From Ascidiella aspersa (taxonomy: Eukaryota), in the NCBI GenBank assembly GCA_963924565.1, contig OZ004607.1, forward strand, positions 28,520,001-28,584,000: a DNA stretch of 64,000 nucleotides, read 5' to 3'. Below, piece by piece: positions 6,405 to 12,715 of the stretch. The notes beneath the pieces are model-generated. The model ran no database searches, had not been told where the DNA came from, and saw only the letters and a list, made by a program, of their open reading frames with translations. How positions within the stretch are numbered: the first letter of the stretch is position 1; each line of letters opens with the position of its first letter. Both the position numbers and the translations under genes were made by a program.

Positions 6405-6914
6405 GCCTAGATTAAGCAACAAAGCCATGGAATCCACTTTGGTCAGCACTACTTAACAGGGCTAATCAAGTTTTTTATCATTTGGCAAAAGTTTCATATT
6501 TGTTATTCAAAACAAACTGTTTATGTGGCAATTAAAATGAAATACATTACTTTATTGTGTAGTAATTCTAAGTTTTATGGTATTTGCAAACTAACAATGT
6601 AATGAATTTTGCGCATTTACTTTCAAATTATGATTTCTTTCTTTGCCTGTGATATGTTGTAGTCATAATTTTCTGTCTTGCCAACATATGTAATTTTCAA
6701 CAGACTTACAAATAATATTGTTTGAAACTTTGACACTGTTGGGAAACAGAAAAATAATGATACTTATGCAAAGTCTGCATAACTTGCACTTCAACATCCC
6801 TAGTGTTTTTCAAGCAATCCTCTGGCATTAGTACTTTAAATTAACCATAACCCTGTTTTAACCTAATTTAATTTTACATTTTAGAAATAATAGAATTGTT
6901 TAAAAGGTAACACA

Positions 6915-7670
6915 ATGTTTGAAGAATTAAACCGTTTAGCTGGCTGGTCGGTTAAATCACTACCTGAAAAAGAGGTGCTACTGATCACTGACCAAGGATG
7001 TGACGGTTCATTTCTGCTGTCTCACTTCATCTCAATGTACCTAAAGGCAAAACAGCCTGTGATATTAATAACTGCTGCACAGTCCCAGACGCACTACAAG
7101 GTGGTTTGTTCAAAATTGGGAGTCAACTTAGAAAAGGCAGAGAATAATAAACAACTTGTCGTCCTGGATTTGTTAAAACTAAGCCTAGATGACTACATGC
7201 ACAAGAGCAGTGCTGGTAATAAATTGACAAATTTGTTTAATGATTTGCGGAACCAAGTGTTTAATGTTATTGATGAAATGTCCACAGCAGACTCCAACGT
7301 TCTTGTTATTTTTGATGATCTATCAATGCTTTGTAGTCTGGGTTTTGACAAAGAAGAAGTGATAAACTTTTTTCACAGCATGGCTGTTTTAAGGCACTTC
7401 ACAAATGCCACATTCCTTACCCTTTTACATTGGGACAATGAGTACCAACAAACAGAAGTTCTAGCTAGTTGTCAGTACTACTGTACTGGTGAACTACAGG
7501 TGAAGGGACTGGACACTGGCTACTGTAAAGATATTCACGGAACACTGACCCTTGTACAGAAGCATACTAAAAACTTTGGCACTGTTTTTAACCGGACATT
7601 ACGACAATATAAAGTTAAAGACCGCACACTATCGCTATTTGCACCAGGAACCTCAAGGGCTGTACTATGA
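6915..7670 (+). CDS. ELP6: Elongator complex subunit 6, uninterrupted 251-aa ORF
   Basis: Contains MFEELN, DGSFLLSHF, QSQTHY..V..KLGVNL, VIFDDLS.L, GLDTGYCKDIHGTL and the C-terminal QYKVKDRTLSLFAPGTSRAVL, all matching the recognised ELP6 pattern. Confidence 0.92.
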   Translation: MFEELNRLAGWSVKSLPEKEVLLITDQGCDGSFLLSHFISMYLKAKQPVILITAAQSQTHYKVVCSKLGVNLEKAENNKQLVVLDLLKLSLDDYMHKSSAGNKLTNLFNDLRNQVFNVIDEMSTADSNVLVIFDDLSMLCSLGFDKEEVINFFHSMAVLRHFTNATFLTLLHWDNEYQQTEVLASCQYYCTGELQVKGLDTGYCKDIHGTLTLVQKHTKNFGTVFNRTLRQYKVKDRTLSLFAPGTSRAVL

Positions 7671-7782
7671 TAAATTTAAATATTCTACTACTTTTCTATC
7701 ATATACATTGGTGCTGCATCTGACAAAGTTGTGTTATGTTTTTTATATATATTTTATTAATATTAGGCAAGCAAACAAAATA

Positions 7783-9354
7783 CTACATTTTCTTCAGAGG
7801 CTCAATACCAAGTAATGTTAATCCATTATGAAACACTATTTTAGTACAATGAAAACACAGTAAGCGAGCTTGGGCAAGTTTTACTGCTTGTCCTTTAACT
7901 GGACATTCCCTTATAGTCGTTCCAACCAAATGACCTAAAGTATATAAATAGTCCAATAAAATAAATGGCTCGAGTCGTTCATAGGTGTTTTTGGTAATAT
8001 CAGTGTACTTAGAAAGATGTTCCAGCAAAGGCTGGATTGATGGAGTGTCGAACAGTAAGTCAGGGTCAATTGAGTATGATATTGGAACCCCACAATTTTT
8101 CTCAATACTACATAAACGGCAGTGAGTGTATTGTAAGAAAATTCCGCAGTTGCCTTTGCTGGCAACAATTGCATCCCAACTGAATTTGTAGCCTTTACTC
8201 ATAGAACCCCGTAAATCACGACAGACCAATCCAGTTAGTGCCAAAGTCTTGATCACATGATTTTCATCTTCAACATCTCTTTTTGTAGTGTTGTGCTTCT
8301 CTCTTTCCTCTTTGACTAACTTTATAGCAGTGTTAAAAACATCCTGTAGAAACATCACTTTGCCAGCCCTGGTTTTCATATTCACAACCCTTCCAAACAT
8401 AATATGCTGTATTTTATTCGCACTCTGTTTGGCCCAATTGTGTCCCAGAACTTCCAAAGAGGCAAATAACTGCTTAAAATGCACCTCTTGAGCAAGGTCT
8501 GTAACATATATCATTTTATCAAATTTTAAGTTCTCATAGCGATCAATAGCAGCAGCAATGTCTCTTGTCAAATATAAAGTCGTACCATTGCTTCTTGCCA
8601 GAATAGCATTAGTTTCATAACTAGGTGCCTCTTTTAACCAACTAGACTGAGACAAATTTAAAGATATGGTTCCATCTTTATTTTTGTCAAGGATGTCTAG
8701 TTGCTTGGAGATAATATTTTTAGCCTGTTCCACATATAGAGATTCCCCTGAATATGAATCAAACGAAATCCCAATGTCTTTGTAAAACACTTTGAATTCT
8801 TTAATGCTTAAGGAACGTGCCAACTTCCAAAATTCTAACATCTCACCATTTTCCATTTGTAGAAAAAGATTTTGTGCTTGTTGGCGAATTTCAGGGTTAC
8901 TCTCTGATTCCTGCGAAACTTTAACATAAATATTATAAAGGTATGAAAGTGGGTTTTTGTAAAGATCATCCACATTTCCATACAGTTTAACTCCAATTGC
9001 CAAAAGTGCAAACTGAATACCCCAGTCGCCAAGGTAATTCATCTTAAATACATCATGACCAGCAGCAGACAAAATATTGCTGAGGGTATTGCCAATCAAT
9101 GTGGACCGAAAGTGACCAACATGAAACTTTTTTGCAATGTTTGGGGAACTGAATTCTACAATGACTTTTTCTTTTTGTAATCTTCTGAAGTATTCTGTGT
9201 GAAATCCGTACTTAGACTTTAAACTTGGTATATCCTCGAGTACATTGTAAATGCTTTCATTGGTTTGACCATTAGCATATGTAGAGAGAAAAGCAAAATG
9301 TTTTTTTCCACCAAACACATATTGACTCCATCGGAAACGTATAAAGTGTAACAT
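7783..9354 (-). CDS. RARS2: Mitochondrial arginyl-tRNA synthetase, uninterrupted ORF (523 aa from ATG 9354)
   Basis: Class I HIGH region VEFSSPNIAKKFHVGHFRSTLIGN, plus NYLGDWG, SYSGES, GTTLYLTRDIAAAIDR, NMKTRAG, LQYTHCRL and C-terminal LGIEPLKKM. The N-terminus MLHFIRFRWSQ is basic and lacks acidic residues, like a presequence. The ORF-track start at 9387 is a TTG inside the upstream acceptor region. Confidence 0.93.
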   Translation of the reverse strand: MLHFIRFRWSQYVFGGKKHFAFLSTYANGQTNESIYNVLEDIPSLKSKYGFHTEYFRRLQKEKVIVEFSSPNIAKKFHVGHFRSTLIGNTLSNILSAAGHDVFKMNYLGDWGIQFALLAIGVKLYGNVDDLYKNPLSYLYNIYVKVSQESESNPEIRQQAQNLFLQMENGEMLEFWKLARSLSIKEFKVFYKDIGISFDSYSGESLYVEQAKNIISKQLDILDKNKDGTISLNLSQSSWLKEAPSYETNAILARSNGTTLYLTRDIAAAIDRYENLKFDKMIYVTDLAQEVHFKQLFASLEVLGHNWAKQSANKIQHIMFGRVVNMKTRAGKVMFLQDVFNTAIKLVKEEREKHNTTKRDVEDENHVIKTLALTGLVCRDLRGSMSKGYKFSWDAIVASKGNCGIFLQYTHCRLCSIEKNCGVPISYSIDPDLLFDTPSIQPLLEHLSKYTDITKNTYERLEPFILLDYLYTLGHLVGTTIRECPVKGQAVKLAQARLLCFHCTKIVFHNGLTLLGIEPLKKM

Positions 9355-9377
9355 TATATCAGCATGAAGGTTGTTGC

Positions 9378-9441
9378 CTGCAGACAAAAAAACAATGATA
9401 AATAATTAACACGACCAGTAGATTACACTTGATAAAATTAC
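9378..9441 (-). other. Candidate 64-nt intron and/or trans-splice acceptor between ANAPC11 and RARS2
   Basis: On the minus strand: donor AAG|GTAATT 7 nt after the ANAPC11 stop, and acceptor TTGTTTTTTTGTCTGCAG|GC 23 nt before the RARS2 ATG. The length matches neighbouring short introns. Confidence 0.65.
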
Positions 9442-9448
9442 CTTTATA

Positions 9449-9786
9449 CTAAGAACCTTCTGATTTTGTTTCAACTTCTTTAAACTTCCATTCTTGTCTA
9501 CACATGGGACACTGTTGATTCATCTGCTGAGATTGGAGCCATTTTAGAATGCAGTGCATATGAAAACAATGGCTACATTGGCCCCAAACTGCAAAACAAC
9601 ATATATATTAAACAGAACATTAAAAAATATGCCAAACTTTGTTATACCTATTGGGCAATCATCTCCAGCTGTTTTGCAGTTAGAGCAACAATATTCAAAA
9701 GGGTATCGGCAGATGCCACAATTGTCGTCTGAAGCCTGCCAATGCCAACTTACGACGGCAAACCATTTGTTAATTTTAACCTTCAT
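9449..9786 (-). CDS. ANAPC11: Anaphase-promoting complex subunit 11 (RING-H2), 2 exons
   Basis: Exons 9786-9648 and 9588-9449 with a 59-nt GT-AG intron give MKVKINKWFAVVSWHWQASDDNCGICRYPFEYCCSNCKTAGDDCPIVWGQCSHCFHMHCILKWLQSQQMNQQCPMCRQEWKFKEVETKSEGS*. Confidence 0.96.
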
Positions 9787-10839
9787 CCGGGTATCTGGGC
9801 CAGTTTGTTAATTGACTAAAAGTTTGGTTATCAATTATCAAACTCTGGCAGTAGTGCAAACCGATTTTGGTAAAATGTTTTATGCAAGTTTTAGAATGTT
9901 TTCAAAACTGTTTACCACAACATTTCTTTTTTGGAATTGTTTTATCCTTATTGTAGGTTTAGCTAAAACACGCAAAATTGCAAGTCATCAGACATCCTAA
10001 TAACTTCGGGCTCTATCTCCCCGATTCACTGTTAGCAACGATTTTTTTTTTGAAGGCTATGTTATAAATAAAAATAAAGACCTAAACTTGGGTGGCCATA
10101 TTCAATAACGCACAACCTCGAAAGAAACATACTGTTCTCTTTCTATAAGGAAGAACTTTTAACTTAGATTTAAAAAAGATGCTTAATGCATTAAAACATA
10201 TTATTTAAGTTTAACACATTGCTCTCTATAATGGATTTGAGTCGTAGCAACAAGCAGTAGGTCTTGTGTAATCGCAAGCGCAAAGGAGTTTCCGGTTACC
10301 ATAAACGCGTACCGTAGGTCTAGTTTTTTCAGAGCAGGCCTGCTGATGAGACAGGGGTGCGAGCATATTTTGTACAATGTGCGCACTTATTTTTAGAATG
10401 TGCACATTTTCACTGGTGTGTACATGCTTCTGGTATTACGGTCTGGCGCAAAAAGCTAGCGTCGTCCGGTTTGCGCATAAACGCGTTGCTAGCGTTAACG
10501 GCAAATTTCGTCGCTTCTAACCGAAAGCGTCAAAAGTTGAAATATTTTATCTTTCCGCAACCTAAAGCGTTTGAGTTAGCATTAGCGTAAGCGAACATTC
10601 ACAATGCCACTAAGAACTATTCCATTGGGCTAACCTGTAATTATACAAAAAAGTACCGCTATAAGTTACTGTTATCAAAATTTGTGATTTATTTTTATTG
10701 TTTACCTATAGTTAGGTTGGTTAAAAATTGTAGTTTACACAATTGGCCATTATAGATTACTTTGGATGCTACTTTTTGCATTTACATTAGTAGGCTAATG
10801 GTGGCTACAAATATAGTGTCCGGGGTCCATGACCTATAG

Positions 10840-12239: not shown

Positions 12240-12435
12240 TTACCTAATTTAATTTTCTGGGTGCGCTCGTGGGGATTCCCAATAAATATTTTTGGGTATC
12301 AAATTGTTGTACCTAATTTAATTTTCTGGGTGCGCTCGTGGGGATTCCCAATAGATATTTTTGGGTATCAAATTGTTGTACCTGATTTAATTTTCTGGGT
12401 GCGCTCGTGGGGATTCCCAATAAATATTTTTGGGT
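12240..12435. repeat. 69-bp tandem repeat (~3 copies) in the left subterminal region
   Basis: gtgcgctcgtggggattcccaata(a/g)atatttttggg recurs at 12261, 12330 and 12399, with a related copy near 12103. Confidence 0.9.
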
Positions 12436-12715
12436 TGCACATTTTTCCACCCAATTGTTATATTGGGTAATTTTGGCATGTGCCACATTCAAAATACAAG
12501 GCAACTTTTTGGGTGGAAAAACACTTTACCCAATTAAATTGGGTTTAAGTTTTACCACACAAATATACAAAAAGAAAGTGTGTATTTAAAAGAACAGTGC
12601 TGCATTGAAAAGAAAAACATAAAGGAACAAATACTCAAACATAATACTTAAGGAAAAACAGAGAATATGTTTAACAGAACAAGAAAAACACAGAACCTGA
12701 GCAAAACACAATAAA

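Follow-up and report, generated by a model that had tools for sequence, protein, structure and literature searches.

In a 64,000-nucleotide (nt) stretch of the genome of the tunicate Ascidiella aspersa (contig OZ004607.1, positions 28,520,001–28,584,000; referred to as the window) the genes ANAPC11 and RARS2 follow each other on the minus strand with a spacer of only 94 nt (9448–9355) between the stop codon of the first and the ATG of the second. We suggest that the two genes probably constitute a two-gene operon of the type described in Ciona or, failing that, a pair of closely adjoining genes on one strand. According to this proposal transcription would begin upstream of ANAPC11 and would run through both genes. 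The AG at 9379–9378 would be the acceptor for trans-splicing of the spliced leader (SL), and the RARS2 mRNA would gain a capped 16-nt leader followed by a 5′ untranslated region (UTR) of 23 nt. By analogy with Ciona, position 9378 is probably also the 3′ end of the ANAPC11 mRNA. A previous description of this DNA, in the following called the sequence-only reading, had proposed an intercistronic intron of 64 nt at 9441–9378 and three possible outcomes: resolution of an operon by SL trans-splicing, a cis-spliced bicistronic RNA, or a fusion protein. In our proposal this "intron" would essentially be the 3′ UTR of ANAPC11, the GT at 9441 would be a donor-like site within it that only a minority of transcripts, or none, would use, and no fusion protein would be made. 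The features of the locus are compiled in Table 1.

The identities of both genes, as given in the sequence-only reading, were confirmed by Pfam. ANAPC11 consists of two exons coding for 92 amino acids (aa), and both exons match the family zf-ANAPC11 (E=3.4e-8 for exon 1 and E=3.4e-16 for exon 2). Exon 1 is 80–83% identical to the relatives P0121 and P0122. Intron 1 was accepted because its removal restores the conserved motif ...DDCPI-V-WGQCSHC..., and the open reading frame (ORF) of P0121 runs through an intron at the matching position. The RARS2 ORF comprises the catalytic domain of a class-I arginyl-tRNA synthetase (ArgRS; tRNA-synt_1d, E=2e-72) and the anticodon-binding domain (DALR_1, E=2e-20). 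Among named sequences it is nearest to the mitochondrial ArgRS of Phallusia, Clavelina, Ciona, and Styela with 46–52% identity; in the protein database searched, which contained no self-match, 52% was the best value. Its start methionine lines up with the first methionine of most tunicate orthologues. ANAPC11 looks like the first cistron, since on the minus strand no gene-like ORF of at least 60 aa was found for about 3 kb upstream of it.

The organization of the spacer agrees well with the operons of Ciona intestinalis (Satou et al. 2006, PMC1488885; Satou et al. 2008, PMC2760879). These operons were defined as same-strand gene pairs less than 100 nt apart, and in those with both ends mapped the upstream poly(A) site is located right next to the AG used for trans-splicing of the downstream gene (PMC1488885). 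In addition, 16 of 18 upstream cistrons are devoid of an AATAAA within 40 nt, and gaps of less than 100 nt before an SL-spliced gene are specific to operons (PMC1488885). About one fifth of the Ciona genes reside in operons, which are rich in single-exon genes (PMC2760879). The pair studied here likewise lies on one strand with a gap below 100 nt, its members are functionally unrelated housekeeping genes, and the downstream member has a single exon. A pattern search of the minus strand from 8683 to 10687 did not find an AATAAA, and only the TATAAAG directly after the ANAPC11 stop codon could be a variant poly(A) signal or a TATA-like element. The 94-nt gap, the TATAAA beside the stop codon, and the missing AATAAA that had been described before all hold, in their coordinates as well as in their arithmetic, on rechecking the sequence. 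The missing AATAAA is, however, no oddity, because it is a published hallmark of the upstream cistrons in Ciona operons.

A strong acceptor (13 of 16 positions are pyrimidines) is situated just before the downstream ORF, 71 nt after the ANAPC11 stop codon and 23 nt before the RARS2 ATG. Acceptors that have no partner donor upstream of them are the ones used for SL trans-splicing, whereas paired acceptors are preferentially cis-spliced (rule restated in PMC1488885). With regard to this hallmark the locus is ambiguous, as the acceptor has the expected position, yet a donor-like AAG/GTAATT (the slash marks the splice junction) is found 64 nt upstream of it. Acceptors of the YAG type are present 23–30 nt before the ATG of ANAPC11, of RARS2, and of the neighbouring gene ELP6. 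They therefore belong to gene starts in this region in general, and the acceptor at 9378 is no sign of an intron. In fact its placement as an SL acceptor would already explain it, so that no cis intron is needed.

The genome carries the matching leader. The 16-nt SL of Ciona followed by GT has 884 matches in the 308.6-Mb assembly as compared to 55 for a reversed control. Most of these matches are organized in tandem arrays with a period of 584 bp, and in one array unit the leader is followed by a donor (SL/GTAAAT) and a downstream Sm-like GATTTTTGC. The array units are probably the SL RNA genes. As judged from these matches, the genome encodes what is required for SL trans-splicing, with the same leader as in Ciona. 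Large arrays with the exact 16-nt Ciona leader are found at about 5.22–5.45 Mb of G000 C3 (e.g., L005:1380–1600, minus strand). From the geometry of the locus and the presence of these genes we infer that ANAPC11 and RARS2 are cotranscribed, that the 9378 acceptor is used by the SL, and that the poly(A) site of ANAPC11 lies at this position. Of the outcomes envisaged in the sequence-only reading, resolution of an operon through trans-splicing of the SL at 9378 would fit every testable point, namely the SL genes, the gap, the AATAAA, and the single-exon RARS2. It is the most ordinary branch of that interpretation and the only one that is supported.

Table 1. Features of the ANAPC11–RARS2 locus. 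Positions refer to the window; a slash marks a splice junction. Donor sites are rated by the number of matching consensus positions and by the local frequency of sites of the same grade.
Feature	Position	Strand	Description	Consensus positions	Local frequency
Possible SL acceptor of ANAPC11	AG 9816–9817	−	TTTTAG/, 29 nt before ANAPC11 ATG
ANAPC11 exon 1	9648–9786	−	ATG 9786–9784; 46 codons + 1 nt
ANAPC11 intron 1	9589–9647	−	59 nt; TAG/GTATAA ... TTTTGCAG/T; donor called proven	5/9	1 per 75 nt (generic matrix)
ANAPC11 exon 2	9449–9588	−	Stop TAG 9451–9449; protein end ...EWKFKEVETKSEGS
Weak donor-like site AAG/GTTCTT	9451–9459	−	Context GAAG/GTTCTT; GT 9456–9455; in last ANAPC11 codons	6/9	1 per 52 nt (generic matrix)
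TATAAAG	9442–9448	−	Directly 3′ of ANAPC11 stop; TATAAA at 9448–9443
Donor-like site AAG/GTAATT	9436–9444	−	Context AAAG/GTAATT; GT 9441–9440; 7 nt past stop	8/9	1 per 3,641 nt (consensus match); 1 per 687 nt (generic matrix)
GT..AG unit, 64 nt	9378–9441	−	Under the operon model most of the ANAPC11 3′ UTR (9448–9378)
Pyrimidine tract and CAG/G acceptor	9378–9398	−	TTTTTTTGTCTGCAG/G; AG 9379–9378; candidate RARS2 SL trans-splice acceptor
RARS2 5′ UTR, 23 nt if trans-spliced	9355–9377	−	Contains a 3-codon upstream ORF
RARS2	7783–9354	−	Single uninterrupted ORF, 523 aa + stop; ATG 9354–9352
Likely RARS2 poly(A) signal (last cistron)	7753–7758	−	Canonical AATAAA, 25 nt past RARS2 stop; pattern search

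The spacer has no further conspicuous properties. The 64-nt unit and the locus as a whole are single copy, as no second copy was detected in the genome, the predicted RNA fold of the spacer is not unusual (z=0.34), and no Rfam families were found in the window. The short leader of RARS2 contains an upstream ORF of three codons (ATG CTG ATA TAA, 9365–9354 on the minus strand, with its ATG at 9365–9363), the stop codon of which overlaps the main start codon as TAATG. The context of this upstream ATG is weak, and the main ATG has an A at position −3.

The TATAAAG after the ANAPC11 stop codon also allows for a quite different explanation, namely that both genes are transcribed independently and that RARS2 has its own start site. 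In one version of this explanation TATAAAG would be a TATA box, transcription would begin near 9420, and the outron would be short; in another version transcription would begin within exon 2 of ANAPC11 or upstream of it, and 9441–9378 would be an intron in the 5′ UTR of RARS2. TATAAAG indeed fits the TATA-box consensus and is located about 65–70 nt upstream of the acceptor, and many trans-spliced genes of Ciona are monocistronic with outron lengths peaking near 100 nt (PMC4691747). However, a TATA-driven start would produce an outron of about 40 nt, which is below the minimum of 51 nt that was adopted in the same study from work on C. elegans (PMC4691747), and with a start inside ANAPC11 the RARS2 leader would gain several upstream ATGs. 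Moreover, the operon specificity of gaps below 100 nt before SL-spliced genes in Ciona (PMC1488885) argues against separate transcription. Independent transcription of the two genes is thus in our opinion quite improbable.

The donor-like site at 9441 deserves closer consideration, as it is the basis for the explanation in which the 64-nt unit is a true intron between the two cistrons. The 9441 donor would then be cis-spliced to the acceptor of the SL in a substantial share of the dicistronic precursors. The product would be a stable ANAPC11–RARS2 RNA ending at the AATAAA of RARS2, from which ANAPC11 would be expressed while RARS2 would remain essentially untranslated, and the competition between cis- and trans-splicing would set the ratio of the products. 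Such an operon-internal intron could act as a switch, in which one acceptor is shared by the cis donor and the SL and in which ANAPC11, having no AATAAA of its own, borrows the poly(A) signal of RARS2. We consider the genuine intron unlikely, and we regard its role as a switch as equally doubtful.

Nevertheless, several observations speak in favor of this intron. The 9441 donor agrees with the consensus MAG/GTRAGT at 8/9 positions and thereby surpasses the donor of ANAPC11 intron 1 (5/9). In addition, it is nearly identical to the donor of the SL RNA (AAG/GTAAAT) and would plausibly be functional if the spliceosome sees it. The length of 64 nt is close to the 59 nt of the neighbouring ANAPC11 intron 1, and given the acceptor a donor of this grade would be expected by chance in only about 1–5% of such gaps. 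An RNA spliced in this way would not be expected to undergo nonsense-mediated decay, as the junction lies 7 nt past the stop codon. For this decay pathway a 50–55 nt rule applies. Finally, acceptors of Ciona are known to be used in cis as well as in trans, with donor strength being inversely related to trans-splicing (Yokomori et al. 2024, PMC11155486).

How much weight the donor can carry depends on how often such sites occur. The frequencies were counted in a local sample of 264 kb with the consensus and with a generic donor matrix, which is approximate. We also tried to derive a species-specific splice matrix by expectation maximization (two and four components, with cross-selection, on ORF-bridging GT..AG pairs of the 264 kb), but every run converged on GC-rich noise or on a repeat family, because short introns flanked by long open stretches are too scarce in the sample. 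About 31 positions of the spacer could host a donor with an intron of at least 40 nt, and together with the donor density this leads to the chance of about 1–5% per junction. Acceptors as good as the one at 9378 occur locally once per 2,563 nt.

The sampled strand sequence of 528 kb contains four GT..AG pairs that are 40–100 nt long and of this quality or better, as compared to about 3.5 expected from the separate frequencies of donors and acceptors, and the other three of the four are located in apparently non-coding DNA. Therefore the quality of the sequence alone is no demonstration of an intron at 9441–9378. Furthermore, junctions are numerous in an operon-rich genome, so that an event with a chance of 1–5% is expected to recur many times. 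A comparable site is in fact present at ELP6 (6883–6917, plus strand), where a TTTTAG acceptor is found 30 nt before the ATG and a donor-like AAAG/GTAACA 7 nt before the ATG; good donor look-alikes thus occur in the leaders of this region. Also, in the cis-spliced RNA the RARS2 reading frame would be buried behind an ORF of 92 codons and an out-of-frame upstream ATG. The cis-spliced bicistronic RNA of the sequence-only reading may exist, but it depends on one donor-like site of a kind that chance would produce in about 1–5% of such gaps.

Among known systems, the Ciona class TS-1stAS, whose genes receive the SL at the acceptor of their first cis-spliced intron, is alike in that one acceptor could be joined either to a cis donor or to the SL, and by this likeness donor strength would decide the balance between cis- and trans-splicing (Yokomori et al. 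2024, PMC11155486). In this class, however, donor and acceptor belong to the 5′ region of one gene, whereas here the donor lies in the 3′ UTR of the upstream gene; moreover, the paired donors of the class were reported to be weak (PMC11155486), whereas the 9441 donor looks fairly strong. The SL1-type operons of C. elegans that have no intercistronic sequence resemble the locus as well, since the upstream gene's 3′ end coincides with the trans-splice site of the downstream gene. According to the C. elegans rule restated in PMC1488885, an upstream donor would be expected to turn trans-splicing at a site into cis-splicing. The characterized SL1-type cases nevertheless carry an AATAAA, which the locus here does not, and lineage and SL are different. 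Compared with the Ciona operons, the ANAPC11–RARS2 pair differs in having a donor-like site in the upstream 3′ UTR and hence an acceptor that is not strictly unpaired.

A RING–ArgRS fusion was the most far-reaching outcome proposed in the sequence-only reading. It would arise from readthrough of the TAG once 9441–9378 has been removed, or from splicing at the 9456 donor, which deletes the stop codon. The arithmetic behind this idea is correct. Excision of the 64-nt unit leaves 30 nt of the spacer and brings ANAPC11 and RARS2 into one frame with a single TAG and no other stop codon, as could be confirmed by local translation of the joined sequence, and the 9456 donor, which is indeed the weaker one, has the same phase as the 9441 donor. 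Both splices would thus keep the frame, and there is no second stop codon between the ORFs.

Nevertheless, the fusion has no support beyond this frame match, and we consider it very improbable. A match of the frames occurs by chance in one of three cases, as had already been stated, and by our estimate in about one of six if the absence of further stop codons is taken into account. A donor like the one at 9456 occurs once per 52 nt and, being at background level, carries no weight. Known readthrough contexts include UGA-CUAG and UAG-CARYYA. The ANAPC11 stop codon has the context UAG UAU AAA; to our knowledge this is no known readthrough context, which argues against readthrough. The last eight residues of ANAPC11, VETKSEGS, through which the fusion would have to pass, are not conserved, since the close relative P0121 ends with ...EWKFKEV and P0123 with ...KEN. 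The alignment of the RARS2 start with the first methionine of the tunicate orthologues likewise speaks against a longer protein, and one would not expect a mitochondrial presequence to function when about 100 residues precede it. Finally, a RING domain is absent from all of the 120 best RARS2 relatives, with proteins of up to 915 aa being eligible.

Comparison with related species gives some indication of conserved linkage. The ANAPC11 entry P0121 and the RARS2 entry P0005 are located on contigs of identical size (709,562 nt), and the same is true for P0122 and P0007 (808,328 nt). These identical sizes suggest that the linkage of ANAPC11 and RARS2 is conserved in two related species. A second ANAPC11 search yielded no further tunicate contigs common to both genes. 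A metagenome scan for tunicate RARS2 transcripts retrieved only ArgRS relatives with 31–39% identity; none of these was tunicate-like, and most were located on long contigs of metagenomes. In the literature search no paper was found that names ANAPC11, RARS2, and operon together, nor were the species and the pair found.

A further entry, P0123, is a correctly spliced ANAPC11 of 85 aa from a related tunicate on a transcript-like Logan contig of 2,036 nt. This length is far above the need of a monocistronic ANAPC11 mRNA and corresponds approximately to the size of a dicistronic RNA of ANAPC11 and RARS2. No member of the RARS2 cluster has a contig of that size.

Some points weigh against the operon that we propose. 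The equal size of the contigs is the sole ground for the adjacency of the genes in the two relatives. In Styela clava ANAPC11 and RARS2 are found on different chromosomes, and therefore the pair is not kept in all tunicates. In addition, the good donor-like site 64 nt upstream of the acceptor should compete with the SL. It is tempting to speculate that binding of U1 at this site beside the TATAAA may damp cleavage there and favor read-through into RARS2.

If ANAPC11 and RARS2 form an operon as suggested, the locus is one more case of the gene arrangement that was described in Ciona from 2006 to 2008. For annotation this means that gene predictors should keep ANAPC11 and RARS2 separate and should not splice across the gap. 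If, on the other hand, the 9441 donor is used, the locus would be a compact test case for the competition of cis-splicing, SL trans-splicing, and 3′-end formation at one operon acceptor, the mechanism of which was left open in the Ciona papers.

The lack of introns in RARS2 appears not to be restricted to Ascidiella. Full-length uninterrupted RARS2 ORFs were found on large ENA contigs (P0001 and P0005–P0009), which suggests that an intronless RARS2 is common to several related tunicates; the ORF caller behind these entries evidently works without splicing, as can be seen from P0121 and P0122. An intronless RARS2 would fit the excess of single-exon genes reported for operons of Ciona, and it is a hint that the gene arose long ago as a retrogene.

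Downstream of the pair, RARS2 (minus strand, stop codon 7785–7783) and ELP6 (plus strand, stop codon 7668–7670) are convergent with 112 nt between their stop codons, and their 3′ UTRs must therefore be very short or overlapping. Elsewhere in the window, at 12261–12504, ORFs on both strands contain the peptide VRSWGFPI.IFGYQIVVP.LIFW repeated at least twice, which indicates a roughly 70-nt tandem DNA repeat immediately upstream of a SAM-domain gene. The G+C content of the window, calculated in 2-kb bins, rises in a step from about 30–35% in the first 26 kb to about 38–46% from 26 kb on.

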